64,000 nt of DNA, taken from positions 1 to 64,000 of IMG/VR virus record IMGVR_UViG_3300042540_001822; one strand, given 5' to 3'. Shown here in pieces: positions 26,431 through 46,656 of the stretch. The notes beneath the pieces were generated by a model. That model was given only the letters and a program-made list of their open reading frames with translations, made no database searches and had not been told where the DNA came from. Each line of letters opens with the position of its first letter. The stretch's first letter is position 1. Position numbers and translations under genes: made by a program.

Positions 26431-26526
26431 ATACTTATTTTAATCCATTGGAGATTAATCTACTTAATGAGAAATTACATTATATTCTTGGTGTATGGGT
26501 GAAGAAAAACTGGACAAATAAACGAG

Positions 26527-26736
26527 TTAGTGATAATTCATAGGTAAACAATCACAAGATGGTATATCATAAAATTTCTCACCAGTTTCTATATCTTCCA
26601 GTGTGTAATATTTTGTTCCTATTTTCCAAGGAGCATATGTTTTTAAAATTTTATGAACTTTTCCTCTATACTTAATCAATGAACTATCACTAACATCAGA
26701 TACATTCAATTCTGAGTTTTCGTTTTCTGATTTCAT
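26527..26736 (-). CDS. cassette-derived small protein
   Basis: Stop lies in GTTA at 26526; leader …LNVSDVSDS crosses the right cassette end. Confidence 0.65.
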   Translation of the reverse strand: MKSENENSELNVSDVSDSSLIKYRGKVHKILKTYAPWKIGTKYYTLEDIETGEKFYDIPSCDCLPMNYH

Positions 26737-26871
26737 TTTATTCTATGGCTTTATGGTTTGGTGTTTGTTTTTACAAATATACAAATAAGTTTCGGGATCT
26801 CCAAATCTTACTTACACAAATACATCATATTCCTGGTGTATAAGTGAAAGAAAACTGGACAAATAAACGAG

Positions 26872-27090
26872 TTATACAACATTTATAAAATCCTCTATCC
26901 GTTGATTAACTCGTTTTATTTTTTCGTGATTTTCGTCTTGATGGTAAATCAATTCTCTTCTACAATATTCTTCGTAATTATGACCACGTTCCGCAACCAT
27001 CCATTTTTCTTTCTTTTCAAGTCTTTCTGTGAGAATTGATTTGATTTGTTTTAAATCACTCAAACTCATTGTTTTAATATTAAGTTCCAT
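26872..27090 (-). CDS. cassette-borne small helical protein
   Basis: Lies within the 10-bp inverted ends 26871/27109. Confidence 0.65.
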   Translation of the reverse strand: MELNIKTMSLSDLKQIKSILTERLEKKEKWMVAERGHNYEEYCRRELIYHQDENHEKIKRVNQRIEDFINVV

Positions 27091-27102
27091 AAAATAAACG
27101 TT

Positions 27103-27196
27103 GTATAACAAGGTATATACGAAATACCCTATTAAGGTTTATACTAAATTTTAAAGTTTGTTGTTAGGGTACTTCGTATATACCCAACCGTTATGT
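27103..27196 (+). mobile_element. attC-like site a
   Basis: TAAC-AA-[20-bp stem with one A.C mismatch]-CAACC-GTTA. Confidence 0.75.
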
Positions 27197-27197
27197 T

Positions 27198-27425
27198 TCA
27201 TTTTAGACGAGCATACCATTTCAATCTATCATCATTACCAATTTCAACTAATTCAAATTTAACTTTACAGTTTTCTAATATTTTCCAAGGATGAAAATTA
27301 AAACTCAACGGGTCTATTGGTAATTCACCATTTCTATTACCTGTTAAATTTGAGTTATCGCATTTCACAACCCAATAAGGTGTTGTGTTGAAATTGGTTG
27401 ATTTAATTAATATTCCTATTTCCAT
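27198..27425 (-). CDS. cassette-associated hypothetical protein
   Basis: Ends next to GTT 27190. Confidence 0.6.
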   Translation of the reverse strand: MEIGILIKSTNFNTTPYWVVKCDNSNLTGNRNGELPIDPLSFNFHPWKILENCKVKFELVEIGNDDRLKWYARLK

Positions 27426-27468
27426 ATTTATTTAAGTTTAAAACGACATTTATCTGTAACCGTTATGT

Positions 27469-27690
27469 TCAAGTTTTTGAAACAGGACTAACCTCCACAA
27501 TTTCAATTTGGGAAGTTTTATTCAACAGTACCCTATTAGAATATTTAGAAATAATAAAATCTCTAATATCATCAACTGTTGAATTTTCGTCAATTCCATC
27601 TTTCTTCCAAAAAGTCATAGTGTAATTTTGATTATTTCTAAATCTATCACCACTTTTAACAGATACGTTTTTTAATTTAACTGATACCAT
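27469..27690 (-). CDS. cassette-associated hypothetical protein
   Basis: Ends next to GTT 27462. Confidence 0.6.
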   Translation of the reverse strand: MVSVKLKNVSVKSGDRFRNNQNYTMTFWKKDGIDENSTVDDIRDFIISKYSNRVLLNKTSQIEIVEVSPVSKT

Positions 27691-27736
27691 ATTTTTTTAA
27701 TTTATAAAACAATAATTTAACTAAATAAAACAAAAA

Positions 27737-27970
27737 TTATGAGTTTTTCAGTTTTCCCCATCTTTTGTTAAATTCTTCATCTGTTTTAAGTTTTTCCAAA
27801 AATTCATCCTCTGAATAGTTTGAAGTTGTTGTTGTCTTAAATGGTAATTCAACCGGTAATTCTCTCACAACTTCCCATTTTCTTTGTTCTTCAGGATTCA
27901 TTTTTTCAAGTTCATCCATATATTGTCTCCATAATGGATTTTCATCTTCTGTATTTAATTTCCAACTCAT
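27737..27970 (-). CDS. hypothetical protein ending in NS*
   Basis: Carries the shared AACTCATAATTTTTG tail. Confidence 0.6.
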   Translation of the reverse strand: MSWKLNTEDENPLWRQYMDELEKMNPEEQRKWEVVRELPVELPFKTTTTSNYSEDEFLEKLKTDEEFNKRWGKLKNS

Positions 27971-28017
27971 AATTTTTTGTTTTTTATATTAATTTGTATA
28001 ATTTTTGTTTTACATAC

Positions 28018-28071
28018 TTATAACAAATGATAGACAACATTAAAACGATTGTTTATCATCGAACGTTATAA
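28018..28071 (+). mobile_element. attC-like site b (54 nt, CATTAAAACGA loop family)
   Basis: ATGATAGACAA/TTGTTTATCAT stem between TAAC and GTTA. Confidence 0.75.
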
Positions 28072-28075
28072 GAAA

Positions 28076-28246
28076 TTATTTTTTAATCACTATTCCATTA
28101 TCTTTACAAAATTTTTGATCAACAATCCATTTGTTTTTATCCCAATCCCAAACATACATTCCATATATTCTACCAGGATAAGTCATAGGTGGAATTTTTG
28201 TAAAAACCCCTTCTAATATTATTTTTTCTTCTTTCTTTTTCCCCAT
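28076..28246 (-). CDS. 56-aa cassette ORF (below the ORF-track cut-off)
   Basis: MGKKKEEKIILEG...VIKK*; inside cassette 28065-28276. Confidence 0.6.
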   Translation of the reverse strand: MGKKKEEKIILEGVFTKIPPMTYPGRIYGMYVWDWDKNKWIVDQKFCKDNGIVIKK

Positions 28247-28316
28247 TTGTGTATATTAAAAATAACTACTTATAACAAAGTGTAAATAAACACGCAAAAC
28301 ATTATGTGCAAGCCTA

Positions 28317-28490
28317 CTATTCCGCTTCGATATGATTATATATTAATTTCATTACCCAAGCATTTTCAAACTCATAGAACCCACAAGTCGAGCAAGCATC
28401 TTCTTCGGTATCATAGTAGATTATTTTACCTTCTTTATTTTTCATAAAGTCCATATTTCTAAGGTCTATGATTACATATTGGTCTTTCAT
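28317..28490 (-). CDS. 57-aa cassette ORF (below the ORF-track cut-off)
   Basis: MKDQYVIIDL...HIEAE*; inside degenerate cassette 28301-28538. Confidence 0.6.
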   Translation of the reverse strand: MKDQYVIIDLRNMDFMKNKEGKIIYYDTEEDACSTCGFYEFENAWVMKLIYNHIEAE

Positions 28491-28637
28491 TTCGTTTTAA
28501 AATTAAATTTAATGATGATAAGCCGCCCAGCACATAAGAGCGGTTTGGCAAGGCTTGTTGGTTGGTTTTATGGGTTTAGGGTGTGGGGTCGGGGAAGGAA
28601 AACTGGACAAATAAACGATTTATGTGTAATAAAAAAA

Positions 28638-28922
28638 TTATTCAGCACTCACAAAATGACTTTTCTTCAATTCAGAAAAAGTTTCAAATCTTTTTTGTTT
28701 ATCGTCAATTGTTAAAAGATAGTAATACTGTTCACCATATTGAAAATGTGCCTTCTTTTCAATTTTAGCATTACCCTTAGTAAAGTTTCCTACTTTTTTA
28801 TGTTCATCTCCCGAAAATATAAAGTCCATATTAATTGTGTATTGATACTCGTCATTAAACCAGTAATACTTGTCAACATTTTTATCATCAAAAAAAGATT
28901 TGAATTTCTTAATTATACCCAT
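28638..28922 (-). CDS. cassette-borne protein with CTS-like N-terminus
   Basis: MGIIKKFKSFF; cassette 28619-28958. Confidence 0.6.
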   Translation of the reverse strand: MGIIKKFKSFFDDKNVDKYYWFNDEYQYTINMDFIFSGDEHKKVGNFTKGNAKIEKKAHFQYGEQYYYLLTIDDKQKRFETFSELKKSHFVSAE

Positions 28923-28963
28923 TTTGTTGTTTTAATTTATTTTTTACATACACATAACAAGGT

Positions 28964-29164
28964 TTAGGTGTATATGTAAAATAAATCCAAGTTTCTATGT
29001 TTCACTCTACAAAACTTACCATCTTTAGTTTCAATTAAGAAACTAATATCACCTCTATCTAAGTTTATCTTTTCTCGAATGTATCCATCAACTAATGATG
29101 TTCCGAGATTGAAACTGATATGTGTCCCAACTTCTAATTCTTTGTTCATTTTACAATCAATCAT
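28964..29164 (-). CDS. hypothetical protein
   Basis: Start set at MIDCKMNKEL. Confidence 0.5.
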   Translation of the reverse strand: MIDCKMNKELEVGTHISFNLGTSLVDGYIREKINLDRGDISFLIETKDGKFCRVKHRNLDLFYIYT

Positions 29165-29214
29165 GTGTATAAATTTTAAGTTACTAAATACAACAACAAA
29201 TATAAGAAATAAAA

Positions 29215-29559
29215 TTAAACGCCAAACCAAGAACCATTGTGTAGATAACACTGATTTATTACCTCACCAGTTTCAGTGTTTTTAATATCGTATCTTGGTT
29301 TATCCTCTGTCAGATAAATTTTCCTATCAAAATAACCTTTAGTGATTATTGAAATATTTTTAATAATATCATATCCCATGTTTTTGTATTCTGAAAAGGT
29401 AATATATCTTTCTTTGCCTATATTACCATCATAAACTAACATCAACGGTTCTTTTGAGTCAACCCATCCTGAAAATTTATCATGTTTGTTGATGATATTA
29501 AAAACATCCATTCCTTTTGTGGTTACTTTTTCACCTAAATTAAATTCTTTCATATTCAT
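29215..29559 (-). CDS. hypothetical protein
   Basis: Start set at MNMKEF; the upstream extension overlaps attC c. Confidence 0.55.
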   Translation of the reverse strand: MNMKEFNLGEKVTTKGMDVFNIINKHDKFSGWVDSKEPLMLVYDGNIGKERYITFSEYKNMGYDIIKNISIITKGYFDRKIYLTEDKPRYDIKNTETGEVINQCYLHNGSWFGV

Positions 29560-29581
29560 ATTTTTGTTTAATTTTACATTC

Positions 29582-29635
29582 ATACAACAAATGATAAAAA
29601 ACATTAAAACGAACACATATTCTTAACCGTTATAA
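29582..29635 (+). mobile_element. attC-like site c (chimeric arms)
   Basis: Left arm resembles b/d, right arm resembles i; joined at the shared loop. Confidence 0.6.
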
Positions 29636-29641
29636 GTAATA

Positions 29642-29761
29642 TTATTTTTGTTCAAGTAATTTAATTAATTCATCATATTCTTGTTGATTTTCTTCTTTTA
29701 TTACTTTTAACATATAACCCATCGGTGTTAGGTATTCTTTCTTTTCTTTCTTCTTTTTCAT
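29642..29761 (-). CDS. 39-aa cassette ORF
   Basis: MKKKKEKKEYLTPMGY...LLEQK*; lies between GTT 29629 and TAAC 29789. Confidence 0.45.
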   Translation of the reverse strand: MKKKKEKKEYLTPMGYMLKVIKEENQQEYDELIKLLEQK

Positions 29762-29794
29762 AATTTTAAATTTTTTAACTAAGTATAACAAAAA

Positions 29795-30277
29795 TTATTG
29801 TTCATCACTCTCAATAACTATATCTTCTGAATCTAAATTTTCAGAAACCAATTCATCAACAACTTGCTCTATTGTCTTTTTATATTCTTCCATCTGTTCT
29901 TTTTCATTAATGTAGTCAATAATCTCATTTAATTTATTTCTAAATTGCGAAAGTTTTTGACCAATTGTTTCTTCTTGAAAATTTGATTCTCTTGATGTTT
30001 TTAATCTTTCTATTTTTTTCATATTGTATAATTTTTGATACTCATCTACAATTAGTTTTATGTTGTATGTGTCTTTGCTAAACTCTGATTTATGAATATA
30101 CCAAGTCAAAAAATCAACTAACAATCCACTAACAACAGGTTCATTCAATTTAATAACCTCGCTTTCTAATATAATTTCAGCAATAGTTGTCATAGCAGCA
30201 TTTTCCTCTTTATTCCACATATCCATTCCATATCCTGTCTTTTCTATGTATTTCTCTATCAAGTAATCTGATGTCAT
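29795..30277 (-). CDS. hypothetical protein
   Basis: 5' leader GTTAGGTTTAGTTAAATTATTG is shared with gene 32456. Confidence 0.6.
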   Translation of the reverse strand: MTSDYLIEKYIEKTGYGMDMWNKEENAAMTTIAEIILESEVIKLNEPVVSGLLVDFLTWYIHKSEFSKDTYNIKLIVDEYQKLYNMKKIERLKTSRESNFQEETIGQKLSQFRNKLNEIIDYINEKEQMEEYKKTIEQVVDELVSENLDSEDIVIESDEQ

Positions 30278-30315
30278 AATTCTTTTTTTAATTTGTAAAA
30301 CAATAATTTAACTAA

Positions 30316-30369
30316 ACCTAACAAATGATAAACAACATTAAAACGATTGTTTATCATCGGACGTTAGCG
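30316..30369 (+). mobile_element. attC-like site d (54 nt)
   Basis: Perfect 11-bp stem ATGATAAACAA/TTGTTTATCAT. Confidence 0.8.
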
Positions 30370-30648
30370 ACCATTAAAAGACCGCCACAATTCGACAAAC
30401 TTTTCACGTTTCATTTGCCTTAATTCTCTATTATGCGCATATTTTCTTTCGTGGTAAATTTCTATTTCACTACCACCTGTGAAGTAAACTGAATACGTTA
30501 ACCAGGAACTATCCCCGCCAACTTGACCTACTCTTTCAATTTTTCGTAAATCAATGGTGTCGCCCCCAATATCAACTAAAGGATTAACGGCTTCTAACAC
30601 ATTATTTGCATCAGTGGGGGTGTCGTTTTTCAAATTATCTTTCTGCAT
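30364..30648 (-). CDS. cassette-derived protein
   Basis: Stop in GTTA; leader …TDANNVLEAV. Confidence 0.65.
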   Translation of the reverse strand: MQKDNLKNDTPTDANNVLEAVNPLVDIGGDTIDLRKIERVGQVGGDSSWLTYSVYFTGGSEIEIYHERKYAHNRELRQMKREKFVELWRSFNGR

Positions 30649-30721
30649 GTTATTAAAGTTTTGTGCTTCAATTTAAGAAAAAACTACATATATCTGTGAT
30701 CGTTAGCAGTAATACTACCAA

Positions 30722-31018
30722 TCAGTGCTGATTTTTCAAATAATTTGTTGTACATTCTATCCAACACTTTGCTTTATCCGTATTATCCATAAAATCAACT
30801 TTATGAACAAATAAACAAGTAAATTTTTCAGACCATCCCATTGGTAGCCAAAGAGTATTCATGTATCCTTCCAATAATTCCTTATTAGATTTTTCAAATT
30901 TAGTTTCATCTCTTTGTGATAGCCAATCCTCACACATTCTAACTATCGGTTGGAATTCTGGTATTCCAATCACATTTACTATTTTATTCAATATTTTTTC
31001 AGATTCAAATTGATTCAT
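30722..31018 (-). CDS. hypothetical protein
   Basis: Start set at MNQFES; the track extension is an attC half-site. Confidence 0.6.
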   Translation of the reverse strand: MNQFESEKILNKIVNVIGIPEFQPIVRMCEDWLSQRDETKFEKSNKELLEGYMNTLWLPMGWSEKFTCLFVHKVDFMDNTDKAKCWIECTTNYLKNQH

Positions 31019-31061
31019 ATTTTTAAGTTTTGTGGTAAGGTACTTCGCATATGCCCAGCCG

Positions 31062-31280
31062 TTATGCAAAAGGTAGCGGACAACCGTTCGGTATTGTATC
31101 AGCGTCTACAATTTCAACATCCAGTTTTTCACACCAGTGTTTACCCCATCTGTATTCATGATTACCATCATCGTGAATATGATGAGGACATTGCCAACAA
31201 CACTCAACAACCACTACCCTTCGCATAACATTATGTTGCTGCAATGTGGGCTGACCGTTTTCATTTTTACTGTTGTTCAT
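31062..31280 (-). CDS. cassette-derived Cys-rich small protein
   Basis: CCWQCPH...WC...CPLP; cassette 31061-31229. Confidence 0.7.
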   Translation of the reverse strand: MNNSKNENGQPTLQQHNVMRRVVVVECCWQCPHHIHDDGNHEYRWGKHWCEKLDVEIVDADTIPNGCPLPFA

Positions 31281-31321
31281 CTATGTTTCTTGTTTTGTTC
31301 TTTTTACTCAAATTCGTAAAA

Positions 31322-31504
31322 TTACTGTTTTGTGTTTTCTAATTTATTCTCTAATTCCTCCACTTTGTTTCTCCAATATCTCGTAACCGTATATTGTGCT
31401 GAACGAATATAATCGTATGGATGAACATATCCACCCCATCTTAATTTATATTCTTCTTCTTCTAGAGTTTTCTTAGCCTCTTTCAATTCTTCCTCTATGT
31501 TCAT
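31322..31504 (-). CDS. hypothetical coiled-coil protein
   Basis: ORF track. Confidence 0.55.
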   Translation of the reverse strand: MNIEEELKEAKKTLEEEEYKLRWGGYVHPYDYIRSAQYTVTRYWRNKVEELENKLENTKQ

Positions 31505-31511
31505 ATATTCT

Positions 31512-31787
31512 TTAATTTGTATTTTTTAATTTATTCAAAGTAATCACGTTATTTAGTTGCACTTCTTTTAATGTGATTTTTCGTGTATCTTTAAAGTTTT
31601 CGATTACTTCATCCAAATTTTTACTCATGTGTTTATCAAAATCACTTTCAGTTGGGTGGTCTAGATTAGCCTCAAACTCTACCTCAAAACCGTGTTCACT
31701 TAAAAATTTCTTTAATAAGTAAGTTAAACGAGATTTACCAGATGCAACTTGCCCTGATACTGTAATAATTAAATCTTTCTTTTCCAT
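31512..31787 (-). CDS. small P-loop-like protein fragment
   Basis: ITVSGQVASGKS; promoter at 31819. Confidence 0.6.
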   Translation of the reverse strand: MEKKDLIITVSGQVASGKSRLTYLLKKFLSEHGFEVEFEANLDHPTESDFDKHMSKNLDEVIENFKDTRKITLKEVQLNNVITLNKLKNTN

Positions 31788-31928
31788 TTTATTTTTTTAT
31801 AGTTTAGTGTTTGTTTTACAAATATACGAATAAGTTTTCAGATTTCCAAATTTTATCCACACAAATACATCATATTTCTGGTGTATAAGTGAAGAAAAAC
31901 TGGACAAATAAACGAGTTATAAACAATT

Positions 31929-32162
31929 TTAAGAAACATGTTCCCTTGTATTGAGTTCCGTTTTAATTAAACTCAAAAAATCTTTATGTTCATTGTATTT
32001 TTGCTCCATATCTGATTGTGTTGCTCGTGCTTCCCATATCATTTCACCACATCCACAACTGCACCAATACCCGACACCGTAAAATCTTCTACGTTCTGCT
32101 TTGTAAAATCGTAATAGATTTTTTGTATTTAATTTTCTTAATTCTTCGATTGACTTTCCCAT
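31929..32162 (-). CDS. cassette-borne small protein
   Basis: CSCGCG; cassette 31916-32181. Confidence 0.65.
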   Translation of the reverse strand: MGKSIEELRKLNTKNLLRFYKAERRRFYGVGYWCSCGCGEMIWEARATQSDMEQKYNEHKDFLSLIKTELNTREHVS

Positions 32163-32174
32163 AATAAAAACTGT

Positions 32175-32270
32175 TTATAACAAGGTGTATATGTAATTTT
32201 TTTTTACAAAGATATGAATAATTTTTGAAATTTCCAAATAAAAAACTACATATACACCCAACCGTTAGGT
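32175..32270 (+). mobile_element. attC-like site e with a promoter in its loop
   Basis: 17-bp stem (one A.C mismatch); loop holds TTTG-N20-TATCTTTG on the minus strand. Confidence 0.75.
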
Positions 32271-32456
32271 TCAATCATTAATTTGTTTTGATTTTTTTAA
32301 TTCTTCTTCTAACTCTTTTAATTGAATTTCCCAATGTTTCTTAAATTTAATCCAAAATTCATTTCCATTAGGTCCTTCCACCTCAATCTTTTCTCCACAA
32401 AATTTTATTGATGTTTTACAATGTTCAATTTTATCCTCTGTTGTTAAGTAATTCAT
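32271..32456 (-). CDS. cassette-borne small protein
   Basis: Cassette 32264-32504. Confidence 0.6.
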   Translation of the reverse strand: MNYLTTEDKIEHCKTSIKFCGEKIEVEGPNGNEFWIKFKKHWEIQLKELEEELKKSKQIND

Positions 32457-32546
32457 ATTTCTATTTTTTTTAATTTGTAAAACAATAATTTAACTAAACC
32501 TAACATATAAACGAAAACTCGTTTATTTGTCCACTCTTCTAATTAT

Positions 32547-32969
32547 TTAATAACCAAAATCTCCATACAAATCTTGAAAAGATAAATCATTCATAGCACC
32601 TAAATCATTCCAATGTTCAAGATTATTATTCTTTTTTGATTTGTGTTTTGGTGTTGCCCTTTCACTTCTCGATGGCGGTAATGAATTATAAGCATCATCC
32701 CAATATTTTTGCCAAAAATTCAAATCTTCTTTTGATAAGTCTCTTAATTTGATGGTACATTTACTCAAACTTGTTAGAGTTTCTTTTTCTTGTATAGTTG
32801 CTTCGTTTTCATGTAGTTTCCCAACTAAATTTTGAAGCCACCATCCTTTAATTTGATAGTAAGGATGTTTTAGTCCTCTGTTGTCTAATACAGATTTTGG
32901 TATCCAACCATTACCTTCTAGTTTATATGCTTTCTCTGTTTCTTGAATAATATTTAATTTTACTAACAT
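32547..32969 (-). CDS. hypothetical protein
   Basis: ETEKAY...WIPKS N-terminal beta motif. Confidence 0.65.
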   Translation of the reverse strand: MLVKLNIIQETEKAYKLEGNGWIPKSVLDNRGLKHPYYQIKGWWLQNLVGKLHENEATIQEKETLTSLSKCTIKLRDLSKEDLNFWQKYWDDAYNSLPPSRSERATPKHKSKKNNNLEHWNDLGAMNDLSFQDLYGDFGY

Positions 32970-33069
32970 AGTTTAATGTTTAAATTTATTAATTGCCTCT
33001 CTAAAATTTTGTATTTCAATTTAAGTTTAGTTAAACACTACGTTTATACCCAACCGTTAGCGGTAATTG

Positions 33070-33261
33070 TTAAAGTTCTTCTTTTTCCATTTTACCACAC
33101 CTTACACAATATCGTGTTTGGATTGTGCCAACATAAGGATATTGTTGCCCTTGTTTAACTAATAACATATCTATATTTTCTTGTTTCCATTTAGTCCACT
33201 TGTGTCTCCAAAAACAACTACCGTTAACAACGGTTTGGCTAGATTCAGGGGTTGCTTCCAT
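33070..33261 (-). CDS. cassette-derived small Zn-binding protein
   Basis: CFWRHKW...CVRCG; leader SSQTVVNGS; cassette 33056-33228. Confidence 0.7.
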   Translation of the reverse strand: MEATPESSQTVVNGSCFWRHKWTKWKQENIDMLLVKQGQQYPYVGTIQTRYCVRCGKMEKEEL

Positions 33262-39720: not shown

Positions 39721-39789
39721 CTTAGTTTATGGTTTGTTTTACAAATATACAAATAGGTTTTTTATTTAGTCTATATAAATATTCAAAAA

Positions 39790-40284
39790 TTAAAATCCCC
39801 CGCCGCCCCCTTTAAAATTAGGAACTAAATTGTATTTGATCCTATTATCATTCAGCATTTTTTGGACATCATCAAACTTATGATCATTTTTAAGATGTTC
39901 TAAAATGTCAATTTGTATAATGTAATCAAATATTGGAAAAGTTTCTTTGTTGGTAAAAATTCGTTCTTCCGATTGTGATTTATTAAATTTAAAGTAGGTG
40001 ACTGGTTTTATAACAAAACGATTTGATATTTTATCCCCGTCTAACATTATCCTGATACCACCCCATGTAAGAGATTTGTTTCTTGTACAGGAAACACTAT
40101 AATCGTAATTATATTTAGGCAAGTCATTATATCTTGTCAGAAATGTTTTGCTTTCTAATATAAAATATAAATTCATAAGATGGGTGAAATGGTATATTAT
40201 TCCTTCATTTTTTGATTCCTCTAAATGATCCTTCATCAAGAAGTTTTTAAACTTGTCAATGTGTTGTCTCATTTCTTTACTCAT
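39790..40284 (-). CDS. ART-like protein (DarT/DUF4433-like YHFT motif) with CTS-like N-terminus
   Basis: IIYHFTHLMNLYFILES...SVSCTR; AATATATA at 40296-40303. Confidence 0.5.
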   Translation of the reverse strand: MSKEMRQHIDKFKNFLMKDHLEESKNEGIIYHFTHLMNLYFILESKTFLTRYNDLPKYNYDYSVSCTRNKSLTWGGIRIMLDGDKISNRFVIKPVTYFKFNKSQSEERIFTNKETFPIFDYIIQIDILEHLKNDHKFDDVQKMLNDNRIKYNLVPNFKGGGGGF

Positions 40285-40416
40285 AGTTTTATCTTTATAT
40301 ATTAAATCTCAGAACTAAATGTTTTGAAGAAACTTTATGGGCAATGCTAATAATCAGATGTCTTAACAAAATTATACATTTAACATTCTACTTCATTTAA
40401 ATCCGATATAACTCGA

Positions 40417-40671
40417 TTTACTCTGCCCTACTTGACTTCATCTTAGACTTCACCATAGACTCTGCCCTAGACTTCACCATAGACTCTGCCCTAGACTTCA
40501 CCATAGACTCTGCCCTAGACTTCACCATAGACTTCACCATAGACTTCACCATAGACTCTGCCCTAGACTCTGCCCTAGACTTCACCATAGACTCTGCCCT
40601 AGACTTCACCATAGACTCTGCCCTAGACTTCACCATAGACTCTGCCCTAGACTTCACCATAGACTCTGCCC
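40417..40671. repeat. tandem array of two 12-bp units (TAGACTTCACCA x10, TAGACTCTGCCC x9)
   Basis: 19 perfect units at 40444-40671 plus degenerate leading copies. Confidence 0.95.
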
Positions 40672-41121
40672 ATTTTACATAACCCCTTTGTGCAAGCGCC
40701 CCCCGACCCAGTGCTTATTGTATATACGTGAGGGCCCCGGGTTTTTCCATGCTAAGGGTCCCCTAAATTGGTCCATTTAGACCCCTTCTAAGTCCGAGGG
40801 TCCCCCATTTATAACCGGGCCCTGTATAAGGGGCCTTTTACCCCCTAAAAAAGGACCCTGTTTTTACCCCCCTCCATGGACCGGAGGGGACCTATTTTAG
40901 GGTCCATTTGGGTGCTTCGGATTTCCCGGAATTTAAGGCTTATTTATAGAATAGGGTCCCCGGGATGGATTTGGATCCTTGGTCCCCAGCCCTCCCCCAG
41001 CCCATGGCCATTCTTGGGCCCCAAAAAAACCCCCAAAAACACCCGTTGTTTAATCTGTTCATTACCTGGTTTTCCGATGGATTCTTAACCCCGTTTAACC
41101 TCACGCCTAACCTCGGTCCAC

Positions 41122-41149
41122 AAAAAACCCCAGACCGTTAGGCCTGGGG
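41122..41149 (-). terminator. intrinsic terminator
   Basis: CCCCAGGCC-TAAC-GGTCTGGGG followed by a T-run. Confidence 0.85.
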
Positions 41150-41196
41150 CTTGAAGGAGGTCCAACCACGAACCCCCTTCGGGAGGGGGTCCCTTC

Positions 41197-41556
41197 TTAG
41201 TCTTCCCCCTCCTGGTCCATTGATTTTTTACGGTCCAGCCCTTCCAGCCCCCCAAACAACTTTTCCATCATTTTCATGACTTGGTCGTGATCGGATTTTT
41301 TCGTTGCGTGGATTTTCCCGAGGAAATAACCGGCCAGAAGAAGTTTCTTTTCGTAGCGTGACAGGGGACCAGGAACGTCCAGTTCTTCGTCCCGGATTTT
41401 CCTGCCAGATACGAGAATGGCTTCGGACAACTTGCTTTGACTTCGGAAAGATTGAATACAATCCTCCGCAAGTTGGTCGAAGTATTGTTCGGTGAGACCG
41501 AGGCCTCCGGAGATGGTCGAATCGTCGACCGGTGCGTCATGTGGATGCTGTGACAT
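41197..41556 (-). CDS. hypothetical protein, paralog of 51870
   Basis: MSQHPHDAP...SRYEKKLLLAGYF...MDQEGED. Confidence 0.75.
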   Translation of the reverse strand: MSQHPHDAPVDDSTISGGLGLTEQYFDQLAEDCIQSFRSQSKLSEAILVSGRKIRDEELDVPGPLSRYEKKLLLAGYFLGKIHATKKSDHDQVMKMMEKLFGGLEGLDRKKSMDQEGED

Positions 41557-41794
41557 AAAAGAAGGGTTTAAAAGGTTAGTGATGTAAAGATAAGAAAACG
41601 GGACGAAAGAAAAAAATGGAACCCCAAAAAAATCTGGGATTAGTTATCTGAAATGAAGTTGTCCTTTCCCCGCTTATAGAGCTTGGCTGACGGCTTTGCT
41701 TTCGTGGTCATTTTCCTACGGACAATTTGGGCAATGTGCCTTAAGGATAGACCGTGTTGCCAGGTGGTGGTTTCTTTTTGCATGGTGTGGTTGG

Positions 41795-42079
41795 TTATTT
41801 CTTTTTAAATTGTTCAAACCATCTTTCACAATGTTCATTTTTCAAATCTAATTCTTGTACAGGACTTCCATATCCTATATTAAAACCAATTTTAAAAGCA
41901 CTTTTTAATTCTTTCTCACTATGCATTCTTTCAGCTTGCCATTTAGCACCTTCAATCCAAAAAAGGCGTTTAATGGTTATAATTCTATTTTCAGAATCAT
42001 CTTTTGTGAAAGGAAATAATCTTTCAGCTGCCTCTTCAATTGTTTCTTGTTTAGGTTCTTCTGCTGTTGGTATGTTCAT
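41795..42079 (-). CDS. hypothetical protein
   Basis: QETIEEAAE...GAKWQAERM motif common in Bacteroidota-phage small ORFs. Confidence 0.65.
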   Translation of the reverse strand: MNIPTAEEPKQETIEEAAERLFPFTKDDSENRIITIKRLFWIEGAKWQAERMHSEKELKSAFKIGFNIGYGSPVQELDLKNEHCERWFEQFKKK

Positions 42080-42080
42080 A

Positions 42081-42449
42081 TTATTTATTTTTAACTATTT
42101 CTATCAATTTAATTAAACAAGCAAGTTCTGCTTCTTCTTCCTTTCCACCTCCAATAATATAATTAAACATTATTGTATGATGTGGAAATACACCATACTT
42201 ATCTTTTAGATTATACTTCTCTCTAAACCATCTAAATGCTTGTGAGAATGTTGGGGCGGATATACAATCCCCAATACTACCATAATAAGATTCTTGGTTA
42301 GTTTTTGGTGTGAGTTTACCCCAGTCACAGATACAAGGTATCAATTTGGGTGCATAAGTCCATTGCATAAAACAAGGTTCATTAAACCCAAGTTCTTTGA
42401 GTTCTAAGGCTTGTTCGTAAGGAACGAATTCTTTTTCTAAGGAGTTCAT
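42081..42449 (-). CDS. hypothetical protein
   Basis: ALELKELGFNEPC...APTFSQAFRWFREK. Confidence 0.7.
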   Translation of the reverse strand: MNSLEKEFVPYEQALELKELGFNEPCFMQWTYAPKLIPCICDWGKLTPKTNQESYYGSIGDCISAPTFSQAFRWFREKYNLKDKYGVFPHHTIMFNYIIGGGKEEEAELACLIKLIEIVKNK

Positions 42450-42802
42450 AACAAGTTTTTTAAAGTGTATTCGATAGCAGCTTCATAGGCTTCTGTTGGT
42501 GAGTTAGATTCCCCAATTTTTCCTGATAAAACTGCCATATCTCCAAACTTATGTTGAATACACGGATGCCATATCTTACCATTTGTATAGACATAGCACC
42601 AATATTCATGTTTCTCATACAACCACATTATCACTTCCACAATGGTTGGTATTGAAACAGATTGTTTGGTTAAGTTGTAGTTACCTAATGGCGCGTTATC
42701 AATTTGTGTATTACTAATTAGATCATAAAAAGAAGTGCATTTTTTTTTAAAATCTTTCTCTTTTAGCAACTTGCCTAATTCAAAACTTACTGAGGTGTTC
42801 AT
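42446..42802 (-). CDS. hypothetical protein, distant relative of 42081
   Basis: VSFELGKLLKEK...PTIVEVIMWLYEKH...SPTEAYEAAIEY. Confidence 0.7.
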   Translation of the reverse strand: MNTSVSFELGKLLKEKDFKKKCTSFYDLISNTQIDNAPLGNYNLTKQSVSIPTIVEVIMWLYEKHEYWCYVYTNGKIWHPCIQHKFGDMAVLSGKIGESNSPTEAYEAAIEYTLKNLL

Positions 42803-42814
42803 TTCTTTTATGTT

Positions 42815-42967
42815 TTAATCGTGTAGTTTTGTCCATTTAAAGAATCCTATTAGATACATTAGTAACATTCCAATACTTGGTGCTTCTCTAATAATTTCAT
42901 TACCATTTAAGAAAATACAAACTAAAACACCTAACCAAAATGGGTAATACTTTTTTATTTTTTCCAT
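42815..42967 (-). CDS. small membrane protein
   Basis: Start set at MEKIKKYY; two hydrophobic segments. Confidence 0.5.
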   Translation of the reverse strand: MEKIKKYYPFWLGVLVCIFLNGNEIIREAPSIGMLLMYLIGFFKWTKLHD

Positions 42968-43038
42968 TTTATAAATAATTTTTGGTAATGTAAATATAAG
43001 AAAAGACTTGGAAAGAAAAACCGAATCCCCGTTTTTTT

Positions 43039-44004
43039 CTATTCTGGATATAAACGAGCAAGGGCGCGCATCTCTAGAGAATCCCCGTCCAAAATCTGTT
43101 TTTGAACCCTTTCTTCTGTCGGGAGTTCCTGAGGTTCCACGGTTGGCTCTGCCCAAATAATTTCCCCGCCATTTCTGAGGTCAAAGTAAAGCCTTTTCCC
43201 GATGGATCCTCTTCTGTTTTTTGTGAACTCTAAGAAGGTGATGGATTTGTCCTCCTCGTCAAATCTCATTTCCAGCATGCCGGTCGTGGCGTGCTTTAAA
43301 CGATTGGATCCAAGAAAAACTCCGTCTTTGGTCACCTGTTGGATACACAGAAACGTGGTAAACTTGGACTGGGGGTTTCCTCCCATGTTGTGTTTCTTCA
43401 TAAGATTCACTAACCACTTCTGAGCAACAACAGATGAAATTTTGAGGGACTCCTGAACATATTCTTGAACCTCTACAAAAGAATCAATTAGGACAACATC
43501 GAACCCGAGGTCTAAGGCCTGTTCGAGTATGGTTTGAGGATTGTGGTCTATGAACTCCCCTAAAAACAGAGTTTGCAAAGTTGAGAGTCGAGGGAATCTT
43601 TGAACGTATTTGGCTAGATCTACCCTCGTCATTTCCGCAGAGACGAACAGACATTTGGCACCTTGCTCTGTCAGTGAAGCTAGGGTGTCCATGCCAACAG
43701 TGGATTTGCCAACACCCGGGTCTCCAACAAGAATCCAGTTGGTGGCTTTGGGTACTCCACCCTCCGGGGTGAAAAGGAAATCAAGGGCTGTCTGCGTGAG
43801 GTGATTTTCCCACAGAGAATCTGGAAATGACATAGAACCTAAAGAAAGGATCTCTAGCGCCTTGGCTGGTTTGGGAGATAGGGCAACGTGAGGGCCCTTT
43901 GTATTTACCCGGGCCGCAGCGGCCTTCTTCACAGCCGCAGCTATGCGGGCTTTGGCTTCTTCGGACATTGGTCTGCGTTGTCCTGTGGTGGTTTTTCTAG
44001 GCAT
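43039..44004 (-). CDS. RadA/Sms-like RecA-superfamily ATPase
   Basis: Walker A GDPGVGKST, Walker B VVLIDS, QVTKDG, KNRRG. Confidence 0.8.
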   Translation of the reverse strand: MPRKTTTGQRRPMSEEAKARIAAAVKKAAAARVNTKGPHVALSPKPAKALEILSLGSMSFPDSLWENHLTQTALDFLFTPEGGVPKATNWILVGDPGVGKSTVGMDTLASLTEQGAKCLFVSAEMTRVDLAKYVQRFPRLSTLQTLFLGEFIDHNPQTILEQALDLGFDVVLIDSFVEVQEYVQESLKISSVVAQKWLVNLMKKHNMGGNPQSKFTTFLCIQQVTKDGVFLGSNRLKHATTGMLEMRFDEEDKSITFLEFTKNRRGSIGKRLYFDLRNGGEIIWAEPTVEPQELPTEERVQKQILDGDSLEMRALARLYPE

Positions 44005-44081
44005 GGTTTGGAATTGAAATTTGAAGTAAAAAAAACCACGGGCCGAGAGGAGTGCTGTCTCCTCCCAAGCCCGTGGAGTTG

Positions 44082-44582
44082 TTAGGCTGGCTGAGAATCC
44101 AACCGATTGAGTTCGGTTGGAATTGCTGGGGTGGTTGGGTTGGTGTTGGCGAAGCAGTCATCCCCAAGGCCCCTTTCGATAGATTGGGGATTGGTGAGGG
44201 GAAGGCCACACCGGCAACACCGACCTTCGTGAAGAAGGGAAATTCCCTTGGTGCGAAGAAGGTGTGGATGAGCAACAGCGTTGAGGACGAAGTTGAACAC
44301 CTGGGCGAGTTGGGAGTTGGGGAGAAGATTTTTTGCGGGTTTGTAGGTCATGGTGTCCTGGAAGATGGTCCCCGCAAAAACCATGCCTTGTTCCTTGTCA
44401 CCCAGAAGGGAAATGTTGACAAAGAAAATGGGGAGACGGACCTTGCGGTCTTTTTTGTCCCGGGCCTGCTTCACATGCACTGTGATGTGCTTTTCGGTCG
44501 CAGGGTTGAAGAAGGTGAGGACTGCACGACCTGCAAAGAAGAGGCGTGGGAGGGAGAGGGGGTTGACGTTGGAACGTATCAT
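44082..44582 (-). CDS. DUF6011-type Zn-finger protein
   Basis: CCRCGLPLTNPQSIERGLGDDC; start set at MIRSNV. Confidence 0.75.
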   Translation of the reverse strand: MIRSNVNPLSLPRLFFAGRAVLTFFNPATEKHITVHVKQARDKKDRKVRLPIFFVNISLLGDKEQGMVFAGTIFQDTMTYKPAKNLLPNSQLAQVFNFVLNAVAHPHLLRTKGISLLHEGRCCRCGLPLTNPQSIERGLGDDCFANTNPTTPAIPTELNRLDSQPA

Positions 44583-45070
44583 AGGTGGTTGGTTTATAAT
44601 GTAAAGATACGACATATCCCCGAGGATAAAAAATTAAACCCCGTTTTTTTCCAATTTATTTTTGGTCCAAAATTCCCCGGAGAAAACAAAGAATGCATAC
44701 GCATAAAACCCCGGGGTTTCCCATCCTGGCTTGGCCCAGCCTGGGCAGGCTGGGGCTCGGGCCTTGGCTGGGGATGGATAGGCCTTACCAGGCCAGGCTG
44801 GACCTGAGGTTAATAACCCGACGGTTTGATGTGTTTTATGGTTGGTTTCGTTCGGGGTTTTCGTGTGAAGTGGAAAGGGTATAAGAAGGTAGGATTAATT
44901 TAATGGAAAAAAACATACTCAAAACCTTTACTTTATGGAAAAAATGAATTGAAAATTGCCAATGATGATATTTTGGTGGAATAAAAAAGGCCCTCTTTTA
45001 TCGCGCGCTAAGAGTATGTTAGTGACATACTATGTTTTTGGGGGCCTTACCTATTTAAGCAAATAAGTTT

Positions 45071-45262
45071 TTACAAGGAATGATTATACCCATTAACCAA
45101 TCGTTCTGCAAATTCTTTATCCCTAGTTTTTAGGATAAGGTTTTTTGTTTGTTCTACATGCCCTCTGTGTATCTCATATTCTGTTGGAAATTTGCGTTCC
45201 AACAAAACAAGAGAATCTTTACCTTTAACAAATGCTTGACAGGAATCAGGGTTTGGTTTCAT
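45071..45262 (-). CDS. hypothetical protein
   Basis: ORF track. Confidence 0.55.
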   Translation of the reverse strand: MKPNPDSCQAFVKGKDSLVLLERKFPTEYEIHRGHVEQTKNLILKTRDKEFAERLVNGYNHSL

Positions 45263-45300
45263 GGGTTAGGTGTTACACGAATATACAAGTTATCGGAAAT

Positions 45301-45645
45301 TCATTTTTTTCCCGGATCAGTGTAAAAACAAAGTGTGTGGAATAAACCAAATGAAATTGATTTGAACTCTCTCGAAAAAATGTTGTAAGTGTTGAATAGT
45401 TCTTCAAACTCAAAATACATTTTATGTAGAATTTCATTTGCTTTTTCCCTTTCAATCTTACCTTTCTCTTGTTCAATTCTAACATCTAATGCGTTCCAAG
45501 CCAACGAATATACTCTTGCAATTAGTTTATCTGAAAATACCCCACACAACTGCATATTAGCCAGAAGTTTATTGTGTGCTTCGTAGTTTGGTTGAAGTTT
45601 TTTTAATTCTTTTGGTGGTTCACCAACTTGATAATCTAAGTTCAT
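45301..45645 (-). CDS. hypothetical protein
   Basis: Promoter at 45666; left end GTTATCGGAAATTCATTTTT identical to 33379. Confidence 0.65.
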   Translation of the reverse strand: MNLDYQVGEPPKELKKLQPNYEAHNKLLANMQLCGVFSDKLIARVYSLAWNALDVRIEQEKGKIEREKANEILHKMYFEFEELFNTYNIFSREFKSISFGLFHTLCFYTDPGKK

Positions 45646-45708
45646 ATGTTTAGTGTTTGTTTTTACAAATATACAAATAAATTTCTAAATTTTCAAATCT
45701 TATCTACA

Positions 45709-45948
45709 CTAATATACAAGTTGTAGGTAATGCCTTGAAAACCATTCCTCAAATTTCAATGCTTTGTCAGGAACATCTTTAATATCAGTATCCACACTTC
45801 TATTTTTGTATTGTTCCATATCAAACATTCTACCATTACTCCACGCCTTTCTAAGATGTTCCTTGAAAAAGGCACTACTCATAACAGCAGATATAAGCAA
45901 TTGCTCATCGCTGTTATTAAGTTTTTGTTGTTTATTATCATTCTTCAT
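45709..45948 (-). CDS. cassette-derived protein that starts inside the attC k loop
   Basis: Leader …EQLLISAVMSSA. Confidence 0.65.
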   Translation of the reverse strand: MKNDNKQQKLNNSDEQLLISAVMSSAFFKEHLRKAWSNGRMFDMEQYKNRSVDTDIKDVPDKALKFEEWFSRHYLQLVY

Positions 45949-46008
45949 ATTATCAAATTTTGTCTGTTAATTAAAAGAGCAACTGCTCATATCTGCAAAC
46001 CGTTTTAG
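45879..46008 (+). mobile_element. attC-like site k
   Basis: GCAGATATAAGCAATTGCTC/GAGCAACTGCTCATATCTGC, 18 of 20 pairs with two A.C mismatches; R' degenerate. Confidence 0.7.
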
Positions 46009-46021
46009 CTAATAAAATTTA

Positions 46022-46237
46022 CTACGCCTTTACCCATTTTTTACCATTGTGTTTTAATTCTACAACTTGTTTTAATTTCGTTTGTTCATCGTATGCTTCA
46101 ACATTACTACTGTCTAAAGGGTGTTCACCCCATCTGCTGTAAGTAAGTTGTTGTTCCCACAATTCTCTTGCCTGTTTTTCGTCCTTTGCCATTATTACAA
46201 CTTCTGCTTTAATAATGAATTTTTTAATTGTTTTCAT
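46022..46237 (-). CDS. hypothetical protein
   Basis: ORF track. Confidence 0.55.
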   Translation of the reverse strand: MKTIKKFIIKAEVVIMAKDEKQARELWEQQLTYSRWGEHPLDSSNVEAYDEQTKLKQVVELKHNGKKWVKA

Positions 46238-46278
46238 AATCCGTAAATTTTCAAATCTTACCTACACTAATATACAAG

Positions 46279-46656
46279 TTAGCGGTCAGCTTTAGACAGT
46301 TCACTTTTCAGCCACTCTTTACGCCAATTAAGACAGTAGTTAATGGCATCTTCAAGTTTCTTAAACTCTTTACTATGCGGTAATTCCATAAACATTGAAA
46401 TATCGTGAACATTACACACATCGTGTTTAGTTCTTGGACACACCCACCAATGAGTTTTTTTGTATTTAGTATAATCTTTGTTATCAGGTGGACAACCATC
46501 TAACCCACAAATAACATCAAAAGGCATAAAGATACCTTTCCAAACAACTTCCCAGCATCCACTACCTTCTGAATAGTTTTTGGGAGTTTTCAATGACCAA
46601 GCCGAACCGCTAACACGGGTTTGGCAAAATGGCTGTTCAGTAATTCTATTTGACAT
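46279..46656 (-). CDS. cassette-derived protein
   Basis: Leader …PFCQTRVSGSA; cassette 46278-46614. Confidence 0.65.
   Translation of the reverse strand: MSNRITEQPFCQTRVSGSAWSLKTPKNYSEGSGCWEVVWKGIFMPFDVICGLDGCPPDNKDYTKYKKTHWWVCPRTKHDVCNVHDISMFMELPHSKEFKKLEDAINYCLNWRKEWLKSELSKADR

Follow-up and report, generated by a model that had tools for sequence, protein, structure and literature searches.

Integrons and CALINs, including those described in virulent phages by Qi et al. 2023 (PMC9892861), are co-oriented arrays of short cassettes separated by imperfect hairpins closed by AAC...GTT, in which one strand folds better than the other and cassette borders lie in the AAC/GTT triplet. A second precedent is provided by the promoter-early stem-loops (PeSLs) of T4-type phages (Arbiol 2010, PMC2839356; Comeau 2014, PMC4122927), small composite stem-loop plus promoter cassettes between ORFans in hyperplastic regions, where breakpoints of insertion, deletion and replacement fall; those papers left open whether a helper recombinase exists. 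Xer-type enzymes can also act on a folded single strand, as at the attP of CTX-type phages, and REP/REPIN elements with RAYT transposases supply numerous intergenic imperfect palindromes of about 100 nt. Here we compared with these systems a 20-kb stretch of a flavobacterial-type phage, contained in a window of 64,000 nucleotides (positions 1 to 64,000 of IMG/VR record IMGVR_UViG_3300042540_001822).

A first-pass annotation of the window proposed an integron-like cassette array with eleven attC-like hairpins, many half-sites, about 30 small unrelated ORFs, stem mismatches implying that the - strand is the recombinogenic one, and no tyrosine recombinase, and inferred a CALIN-like array that a phage or host IntI could act on in trans. 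The observation itself is confirmed, whereas the interpretation is only partly supported. The array (26300–46710, - strand) comprises about 45 small ORFs, of the order first proposed, most of which are followed within 0–22 nt of the stop codon by YAAC and a punctuation element; 30 of 55 array ORFs have YAAC in this interval, against 18 of 82 elsewhere in the window. All eleven hairpins exist on the - strand, which is also the gene strand, and belong to one family that reads, on the gene-sense strand, YAAC-G, GTT bulge, stem, loop, stem, TGTTR. The proposed strand asymmetry is likewise real, with 37 G.U pairs on the - strand against 7 on the + strand, and no tyrosine recombinase is present in the window.

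A covariance model (R1) built from 80 family members recovered nine of the eleven hairpins at E<0.001 on the - strand, with far higher scores there than on the + strand. The B-type hairpins lie at 27106–27193 (TAACGGTTGGGTATAT ... ATATACCTTGTTA; 115 bits against 43.7 on the + strand, fold -30.7 kcal/mol), 32178–32267 (89.4 against 36 bits), whose loop holds a Bacteroidota-type promoter motif (TTTGG-N19-TATCTTTG, at 32238), and 34510–34594 (99 against 44.4 bits). Those of D type lie at 33735–33824 (GC-richer, 5 G.U pairs; 59.4 against 12.3 bits), 35330–35409 (35.9 bits; fold -30.1 on the - strand against -15.7 on the +) and 45882–46003 (31.3 bits at 45883–46004). The small hairpin originally annotated at 45879 is really the 3' arm of this last, larger element, whose 64-nt loop contains the ATG of the next ORF. 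The A-type hairpins at 28021–28068 (short stem, conserved loop TCGTTTTAATG; 26.3 bits), 30319–30366 (26.3 bits; fold -13.2 against -9.9) and 37117–37164 (49.4 against 13.4 bits) were also recovered; the stem of the 37117 hairpin is fully compensated relative to that at 30319, with the same loop and base. The two remaining sites are weaker. That at 29585–29632 is a chimera, in which a 5' arm of the 37117 type is joined to a 3' arm of the 30319 type inside the conserved loop, and it no longer pairs (E -4.7; R1 13 bits, E 2.1), while that at 39386–39433 is an A-type variant closed by CAAC...GTTG (fold -8.2 against -4.3) that R1 does not reach at E<=10.

The half-sites are real as well: the 5'-core motif occurs 9 times against 0.57 expected, and R1 gives weak hits at several of them. 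A 5' half-site consisting of TAACGGTTGGGTATAA plus the loop motif, without a 3' arm, lies at 32948–33073 (- strand; R1 24.7 bits), and other 5' halves lie at 27443–27465, 30685–30705, 31037–31064, 35650–35678 (16.4 bits at 35596–35692), 37403–37424 and 62699–62718 (18.6 bits at 62675–62732). A 3' half-site (arm plus TTGTTAT only) lies at 28257–28318 (- strand; 21.3 bits), with others at about 36000–36035, 38421–38450 (12.6 bits at 38421–38537) and 28935–28975. The first-pass annotation missed a second, non-hairpin punctuation element, TAAC-TCGTTTATTTGTCCAG, with 15 hits against 0.23 expected. These C elements (TAAC-TCGTTTATTTGTCCAGTTTTYCTTC; 26510–39073, - strand) are often followed by a short hairpin and a promoter motif; the 17-mer starts at 26510, 26855, 28603, 31900, 33363, 34261, 34980, 36878, 37710, 38504 and 39057, and one inverted copy is at 32518–32534 (+). 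Host-type promoter motifs (TTTG-N18-21-TAnnTTTG; 26770–45697, - strand) start, by their high coordinate, at 45697, 34210, 33313, 32238, 31850, 29226 and 26805, giving 8 on the - strand (7 in the array) and 1 on the + strand, against 1.9 expected for both strands together.

The hairpin family is widespread in uncultivated phages of probable Bacteroidota hosts. At least 119 IMG/VR loci carry the 5' core, 91 of 127 hits are full hairpins, and other contigs hold 9–18 hairpins a few hundred nt apart. An alignment of 80 sequences gave 26 pairs, 12 of them with compensatory changes, and invariant G.U (G.T) pairs at 3 positions flanking a 3-nt bulge. The gene-sense strand folds better in 238 of 259 hairpins with RNA parameters and in 232 of 259 with DNA parameters, although with DNA parameters the window's own hairpins favour it in only 7 of 11 cases. 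Such invariant G.U pairs and a conserved bulge are typical of protein-recognised RNA, the element is sense to the genes in 87 of 93 cases, it travels with the downstream gene (95 against 7 endpoints), and some loops enclose the start codon of the next ORF. We considered a purely RNA-level element, such as a binding or cleavage site for a phage-encoded RNA-binding protein or nuclease, or an mRNA stabiliser before each early gene, with breakpoints clustering there only because it is the sole conserved intergenic sequence. We regard this as unlikely, since no Rfam family matches and it does not explain the recombinase linkage or the precise AAC junctions described below, although an RNA role could coexist with a DNA role.

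It is very unlikely that the array is a canonical integron remnant, a CALIN whose attC sites are recombined in trans by an IntI of the host or of another element. This reading is favoured by the AAC...GTT-closed imperfect hairpins between co-oriented ORFs, by cassette borders at AAC/GTT, by HattCI/IntegronFinder-type tools having called such sites attC in virulent phages, and by the finding that IntI1 recombined similar TAACG...CTTGTTAT hairpins of Pseudoalteromonas phage PH101 (PMC9892861). However, an attC covariance model built here (R2), which finds three untrained attCs, scored the window hairpins at 7.4 bits or less and found nothing in four array-rich loci or in P12002L. The bulge geometry also differs: real attCs show a 5x6 internal loop and a single bulged base in the L box, and have an unpaired central spacer plus extrahelical bases on the other arm, whereas here a 3-nt bulge on the 5' arm is followed by a 21-bp unbroken stem. 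The folding strand is ORF-sense, while in the real attCs examined the antisense strand usually folds better under RNA parameters, and many units carry a promoter-like motif of their own after or inside the hairpin. The full element, typical of Flavobacteriia-type phages, occurs only in phage-like contigs and not in isolate chromosomes. Finally, P12002L_attC1, a site called attC by Qi et al., is a member of this very family, and was the one phage site that IntI1 failed to recombine (PMC9892861), which makes action in trans by a host IntI unlikely.

The integron-like reading nevertheless gains strong support from relatives. A tblastn search with IntI1 found a 265-aa tyrosine recombinase just downstream of 13 arrays. 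Anchoring instead on this recombinase (80 loci, 50–100% identity) gave 279 same-strand hairpins upstream against 6 downstream (0.81 against 0.01 per kb), and 51 of 54 loci with at least 1.5 kb of upstream sequence have hairpins there; these loci may share ancestry, so they do not represent 51 independent associations. Both flanks vary in gene content, and genes beyond the recombinase are not conserved between loci. Median TAAC-to-TAAC spacing in these arrays is 388 nt. A conserved hairpin-less TAAC site lies about 41 nt before the recombinase start in 62 of 74 loci, and a similar site is seen in phages Freya and Ingeline. The enzyme has all catalytic residues, its best family models are XerA/'integron integrase', TIGR02249 and XerC/D, all below their cutoffs, and it lacks the additional domain specific to IntI, which also speaks against a canonical integron. 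As in integrons, a recombinase of the Xer/IntI superfamily sits at one end beside a simple hairpin-less site; read outward from it, the inferred crossover edge is distal and the folding strand runs 5'->3' towards the recombinase gene, as for intI and the attC bottom strand, but the ORFs lie on the folding strand and point towards the recombinase. Compared with Xer/dif recombination, there are many sites per genome arranged as an array, no dif-like 11-6-11 duplex core has been identified, and the sites separate genes rather than resolving dimers.

Unit boundaries in relatives fall exactly at the AAC/GTT triplet. Among homology breakpoints between contigs, 75 fall within 15 nt upstream of TAAC (3 expected), and 95 shared segments start at the hairpin's 5' edge. 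Five units found in unrelated contexts start at (A)TAAC and end at the next TAAC, in some cases with only TAAC common to the two neighbouring elements. In cultured, near-identical isolates of Polaribacter phage Freya with identical flanks, five indels or replacements lie immediately upstream of the integrase; every junction lies directly after YAAC, and the left and right repeat copies differ just 5' of AAC. Freya's hairpins match R1 only weakly (23 bits or less), and a search for closely related genome pairs with an indel inside an R1-type array found none.

A possible, though less favoured, alternative is that the units are PeSL-like regulatory cassettes only: terminators, insulators or RNase processing sites paired with promoters, shuffled by the phage's general homologous or microhomology recombination at conserved punctuation, with selection keeping only junctions that respect unit borders, and with the neighbouring recombinase serving lysogeny or dimer resolution and having no role in shuffling. 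The composite layout matches the PeSL description (PMC2839356, PMC4122927), with regulatory element plus ORF as the unit and mini-circles predicted in both cases. Promoter motifs lie on the gene strand and follow hairpins in other loci, the structure is sense-strand with invariant G.U pairs, a U-rich UUGUUAU tail follows a GC-based inner stem, and the window has arrays without a recombinase. The chimeric hairpin and the half-sites broken at several loop positions fit homologous recombination in conserved loops, and point to some homologous or illegitimate recombination as well. However, junctions share as little as TAAC between different element types, and in Freya the flanking repeats are imperfect (an indel plus mismatches in about 20 nt), yet all five events switch within AAC, which is too little homology for ordinary homologous recombination and too precise for selection alone. 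The sharp change in hairpin density at the recombinase gene also argues against this alternative, and sixteen 5' and thirteen 3' nucleotides are nearly invariant across more than 80 contigs, which a plain terminator does not need. In contrast to PeSLs, the hairpins here are much longer (26 bp or more), with invariant cores and a bulge, the promoter motifs are of the Bacteroidota -33/-7 type rather than sigma-70 type, crossovers map to one triplet (AAC) rather than to AT-rich promoter spacers, and a dedicated recombinase gene is linked in relatives.

We therefore favour, with a probability of roughly 0.55, a phage gene-cassette array that works both like an integron and like T4-type PeSL cassettes. 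In this view each unit runs from one YAAC to the next, as structured hairpin, in many units a promoter-like motif, one or a few small ORFs, stop codon, T-rich ATTRCnnM and YAAC. Units would be exchanged, inserted and deleted by site-specific recombination with its crossover in the AAC triplet at the 5' foot of the hairpin, the likely substrate being the folded gene-sense strand and the likely enzyme the small XerA/IntI-like recombinase that related phages encode at the downstream end of the array. The hairpin family with its covariation and strand bias, the arrays in many phage contigs, the recombinase linkage in relatives and the junctions at YAAC are shown by our analysis; that the recombinase catalyses the exchanges, that its substrate is folded single-stranded DNA, and that the array in this particular phage is still active are inferences. 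The enzyme could instead be an ordinary lysogeny integrase, with the variable block next to its attP, and sense orientation, invariant G.U pairs and adjacent promoter motifs are equally what a purely RNA-level element would show. No recombinase was found within the 64 kb or in one other piece of the same contig that was examined, and we interpret this copy, with its many half and chimeric sites, as CALIN-like and partly decayed. The hairpin plus promoter motif probably also insulates each unit transcriptionally, as terminator-promoter PeSL cassettes do.

The many dispersed copies of a roughly 90-nt imperfect palindrome in intergenic DNA, with decayed half copies, also raise the possibility of selfish REPIN/MITE-like repeats spread by a transposase and without function for the phage, but we consider this very unlikely. 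No transposase or RAYT-like gene was seen among the ORFs scanned in the window, and no target-site duplications were seen. Instead, the hairpins lie strictly after stop codons in a consistent sense orientation, their stems covary while the cores stay invariant across distant phages, and they are linked in relatives to a tyrosine recombinase rather than a HUH enzyme and bound exchangeable gene units.

Between about 26.3 and 46.7 kb almost all genes of the window lie on the - strand and are very small, and G+C is 0.27-0.31, apart from a 40-45 kb block at 0.39-0.43. This block (40300-45100) interrupts the array and looks like foreign DNA or a different module, with long intergenic stretches rich in G and C runs (40661-40939 and 44616-45070), several terminator-like GC hairpins, a KaiC/RecA-like ATPase (43039-44004) and a DUF6011 protein (44082-44615). 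Read in gene orientation, intergenic spaces start with YAAC within 0-22 nt of the preceding stop codon for 30 of 55 array ORFs, against 18 of 82 elsewhere in the window, and one of a few conserved elements follows the YAAC. The eleven "full sites" of the first-pass annotation form a single family, which in the gene-sense strand reads (T/C)AAC-G, a 3-nt bulge (GTT), a stem whose first 8 bp are conserved (GGGTRTAT), a variable distal stem, a loop of 6-65 nt, the return arm (ATAYACC) and T-GTT(A/G). Three variants were distinguished: short A-type copies that share the loop TCGTTTTAATG, B-type copies with stems of about 21 bp and loops of 30-40 nt, and GC-richer D-type copies. The 5' core occurs 9 times against 0.57 expected by chance. 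The observation made in the first-pass annotation is thus confirmed, though with three corrections: 29585-29632 is a chimera of two hairpins joined in the loop, 39386-39433 is a weak CAAC/GTTG variant, and the site placed at 45879 is the 3' arm of a 122-nt element whose loop contains the next start codon.

A second, hairpin-less punctuation element, TAAC-TCGTTTATTTGTCCAG, is likewise far above chance, with 15 occurrences against 0.23 expected. This C element (26510-39073), TAAC-TCGTTTATTTGTCCAGTTTTCCTTC, is identical over about 26 nt in some 25 other IMG/VR contigs (loci L001-L030), including GC-richer phages that share almost no genes with this one. It is always preceded by TAA and often lies 15-25 nt before an ATG; it could be a promoter for a phage factor or another recombination site. 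In the GC-richer phage group many genes start with the same ...CCCTAACCCATGAAACCAACCCC... sequence, and gene-sized indels between relatives at about 90% identity (for example, locus L006 versus L016, or L012 versus L028) have their junctions in these repeated gene starts, not at hairpins.

Searches of INPHARED by megablast and blastn, with the array or with one hairpin as the query, gave essentially nothing, and the family was reached only through exact-motif scans and a covariance model. The scans showed that the window is part of IMG/VR contig 3300042540_001822, which is 219 kb long, and placed the B core in at least 119 viral loci; of 127 hits, 91 are complete hairpins of the same architecture, and many lie in contigs of 100-460 kb. 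A scan of bacterial genome contigs gave mostly chance hits; the full element appeared only on 17 small MAG contigs that look like phage, several of them labelled Flavobacteriaceae, Crocinitomicaceae or Bacteroidales, and in no isolate chromosome, so the element is not host-borne. An alignment of 80 copies gives 26 base pairs, 12 of them with compensatory changes, and three G.U pairs flanking the bulge are kept in 77-80 of the 80 sequences. The covariance model built from this alignment (R1) finds the window's sites on the - strand at 26-115 bits, with far lower scores on the + strand. The gene-sense strand folds better in 238 of 259 related hairpins with RNA parameters and in 232 of 259 with DNA parameters, and 87 of 93 elements are sense to their flanking ORFs. 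No Rfam family matches: searches returned only tRNA at gathering thresholds, and only one chance-level miRNA hit in the array at permissive thresholds. Even on the more ordinary reading, the hairpin is a widespread, conserved structured element that is absent from Rfam. Outside the array, Rfam's tRNA model also matches four - strand stretches of 87-132 nt (50001-50098, 50202-50333, 52321-52407 and 54341-54436), which are too long for plain tRNAs and may be tRNAs with inserts or introns, or tRNA-like elements; ARAGORN reports only tRNA-Met at 49619-49693.

To ask whether these hairpins belong among attC sites, we took genuine attCs from class 1 integrons on phage P1 MH445380 and on five plasmids, aligned ten of them and built a second covariance model (R2). 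Although its seed is small and GC-rich, and it is not IntegronFinder's own model, R2 recovers the attCs of qacG2, arr-3 and dfrA27, on which it was not trained, at 43, 21.8 and 18.1 bits. It finds nothing in the window or in four array-rich loci (L044, L070, L042 and L075), and with filters off the hairpin sites score 7.4 bits or less. Of the R''/R' boxes RYYYAAC and GTTRRRY, only (T/C)AAC and GTT(A/G) are conserved, and by direct reading GTTRRRY is present in only about 1 of the 11 window sites. The real attCs show a 5-bp R box, a 5x6 unpaired spacer and an L box with one bulged base, whereas the phage hairpin has a 3-nt bulge on the 5' arm, with no unpaired bases opposite, and then an unbroken stem. 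With RNA parameters, the five strictly selected attCs all fold better as the strand antisense to the cassette ORF, as do most of the genuine ones in a relaxed list; with DNA parameters the count is 7 of 11. The window hairpins, like most of those of relatives, fold better on the ORF-sense strand.

Integron cassettes are promoterless and expressed from a common Pc. Here, host-type promoter motifs (TTTG-N18-21-TAnnTTTG) are enriched on the gene strand, with 8 matches against 1 on the other strand and 1.9 expected for both strands together; they follow hairpins in other loci and sit inside the loop of one window hairpin, although these are motif matches only. Generic sigma-70 and terminator scans showed no excess (12 terminators against 10.0 expected), and the region carries the Bacteroidota-type motif instead. 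There is no tyrosine recombinase, and no integron integrase with the IntI-specific additional domain, in the window; a weak run of recombinase-like tblastn hits at 44082-44615 proved to be the DUF6011 protein. In a published assay (Qi et al. 2023; PMC9892861), the site "P12002L_attC1", whose primer sequence maps to an R1 hit in Polaribacter phage P12002L, was the only phage site that IntI1 failed to recombine. The sites of Pseudoalteromonas phage PH101 that IntI1 did recombine (attC1 and attC2; PMC9892861, Table S3) are also TAACG...CTTGTTAT hairpins, and a gammaproteobacterial phage may therefore carry a related punctuation system. The window is thus probably not a canonical CALIN awaiting a host IntI, and the interpretation of the first-pass annotation, a CALIN-like array that a phage or host IntI could act on in trans, is only partly supported.

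The analogy at the level of function is nevertheless strongly supported by relatives. Using IntI1 as a probe, we found a tyrosine recombinase of about 265 aa immediately downstream of the array, on the same strand, in 13 hairpin loci. The enzyme has core-binding and catalytic domains (PF13495 and PF00589) and the full R..K..HxxR..H..Y catalytic set, in columns that are invariant in our alignment of the recombinases, but lacks the additional domain seen as an insertion in IntI1. It scores best on the NCBIfam model XerA ("site-specific tyrosine recombinase/integron integrase"), at 172-195 bits against an equivalog cutoff of 220, and then on the integron-integrase model TIGR02249 (150-171 bits, cutoff 265) and the XerC/D models, all below cutoff. 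In the reciprocal test, anchored on the enzyme, 80 loci at 50-100% identity, drawn from 526 relatives, gave 279 hairpins upstream on the same strand against 6 downstream, with 4 and 5 on the other strand, and 51 of 54 loci with at least 1.5 kb of upstream sequence carry hairpins there. The recombinase-bearing loci are phylogenetically related, and our hairpin finder is heuristic, with a background of about 0.01 per kb in the downstream control regions; however, genes beyond the recombinase differ from locus to locus, so this is not just a frozen syntenic block. Directly before the recombinase start, a conserved TAAC with no hairpin, followed by TATTATATATA, is present in 62 of 74 loci, and could be a promoter, an attI-like site, or both.

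Homology between unrelated contigs ends at the elements far more often than expected. Of 332 internal homology ends, which are partly redundant, 142 lie in an element or within 15 nt upstream of it, against about 24 expected: 75 lie within 15 nt upstream of TAAC (3 expected) and 67 inside an element (21 expected), with the peak at 0/-1 relative to TAAC. In the dominant pattern, with 95 ends, the hairpin plus what follows it is shared, starting at TAAC, while the integron-type pattern of an ORF plus its downstream hairpin accounts for only 7. Five units shared between different contexts begin at (A)TAAC and stop at the next TAAC, and sometimes the two neighbouring elements have nothing but TAAC in common. 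The outer flanks carry a consensus, ATTRCnnM, before TAAC, but do not covary with their own 3' partners, as expected if they are continually reassorted at TAAC; an outer stem beyond TAAC/GTTA was rejected as a conserved feature, since own partners pair no better than permuted partners. These boundaries match those of integron cassettes (G|TT, or AAC on the other strand), though none of these events is in the window's own phage, and a search for near-identical genome pairs with indels inside R1-type arrays found none. Breakpoints within the elements are equally a property of the PeSL regulatory cassettes of T4-type phages, and the layout here, by sequence alone, is likewise a stem-loop plus a promoter-like motif between small ORFs. 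The main rival, which we consider less likely, is that regulatory cassettes are shuffled by general recombination next to an unrelated lysogeny integrase. PeSL exchange by homologous recombination would fall in the AT-rich promoter or RBS part, next to a sigma-70 promoter, in a T4-like phage, whereas crossovers here map to the YAAC at the 5' foot of the hairpin with minimal homology, the promoter motif is TTTG-N19-TAnnTTTG, and no T4-like DNA similarity was found.

Cultured phages provide a natural experiment. The enzyme's cultured relatives are the "integrases" of Cellulophaga phage Ingeline and of Polaribacter phages Freya (paired with Polaribacter sp. HaHaR_3_91) and Leef, which the describing paper took only as a sign of temperate potential (PMC8776804). 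The ten Freya isolates range from 43,978 to 48,920 bp, and the difference lies directly upstream of the integrase. Mapping Freya_1, 5, 6, 8 and 9 onto Freya_10 reveals five different deletions or replacements, with the mapped flanks 99-100% identical, and every junction lies immediately after YAAC of a T-rich ...ATTGTTnnYAAC motif. The left and right copies differ in the bases just 5' of AAC, as in ...TTTTTACCAAC against ...TTGTTGCTAAC, and the switch is therefore confined to the AAC triplet. The first Freya_10 cassette begins with CAAC-GGAT-stem...stem-TGTTA, the same architecture as the window hairpins, but R1 recognises Freya's elements only weakly, so Freya supports the mechanism rather than membership of the same sequence family. 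Ingeline has the same integrase-proximal ...ATTGTTGCTAAC|ACCC site.

Seen from the recombinase gene outward, the geometry equals that of intI and attC: the crossover edge is distal, and the folding strand runs 5'->3' towards the recombinase. The differences are that the ORFs are inverted, that many units carry a promoter-like motif, and that the bulge sits on the other arm. We therefore consider it most likely (probability about 0.55) that the region is a phage cassette platform that works like an integron but uses a Xer-like enzyme and non-attC hairpins, with the hairpin plus promoter motif doubling as a PeSL-like insulator. The conserved hairpin and its preferred strand, the linkage of arrays to the recombinase in relatives and the junctions at YAAC were observed, whereas catalysis by the enzyme, the single-stranded substrate and activity in this particular phage, whose 64-kb window has no recombinase and many half or chimeric sites, are inferred. 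A more far-reaching possibility, which we rate as slightly less likely than not, is that phages of Flavobacteriia carry their own integron-like gene-capture platform, consisting of a minimal XerA-like tyrosine recombinase, a recombinase-proximal TAAC site and an array of self-promoted mini-cassettes, each headed by a folded YAAC hairpin that is recombined as single-stranded DNA of the gene-sense strand. Such a system would be active today, given that the Freya isolates differ by whole cassettes, and the window would be a large recombinase-less array of it. It would be a second, independently evolved (or anciently diverged) integron-type machine, used by viruses to trade accessory and anti-defence genes.

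If the recombinase does drive exchange at the YAAC hairpins, this is a dedicated, site-specific route by which phages acquire, lose and reorder small accessory genes. It would extend the integron principle of folded-hairpin sites plus a tyrosine recombinase to viruses and to an enzyme outside the IntI clade, would explain why attC finders occasionally flag "CALINs" in virulent marine phages, and would give a mechanism for the hyperplastic regions of large phages, where until now only homologous recombination at PeSLs had been proposed. Hairpins of this kind have been flagged as attC/CALIN in virulent phages (PMC9892861), and PeSLs are known, but the conserved family itself, the long arrays, the linked Xer-like recombinase and the AAC-precise cassette polymorphism in cultured isolates were not found in the literature searched.

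The cargo of the arrays may be anti-restriction in nature. One window cassette (36036-36617, - strand) has a weak match to a Lar restriction-alleviation protein (23 bits, cutoff 28.6), and in Polaribacter phage P12002L (29248-30848 and 38118-38816) the R1-family hairpins flank DNA methyltransferase genes. In other contigs, many array cassettes downstream of hairpins (loci L048, L076, L086, L097, L101, L106, L108 and L137) encode paralogous small proteins with a shared N-terminus (...KFIATTIREYLNE...), preceded by a conserved AATATTTATATATAAA motif. Within the window, five adjacent small ORFs at 59436-61048 and a sixth at 47792-48151, on the - strand, all match one gene in locus L002 (41-65% identity) and together form a paralogous family. 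Also outside the array lie an HNH endonuclease (338-1321, + strand), a weak Rv2179c-like 3'-5' exoribonuclease match (22640-23167, - strand; 25.4 bits, just under cutoff) and a lysozyme/endolysin-domain protein (10145-11002, - strand).
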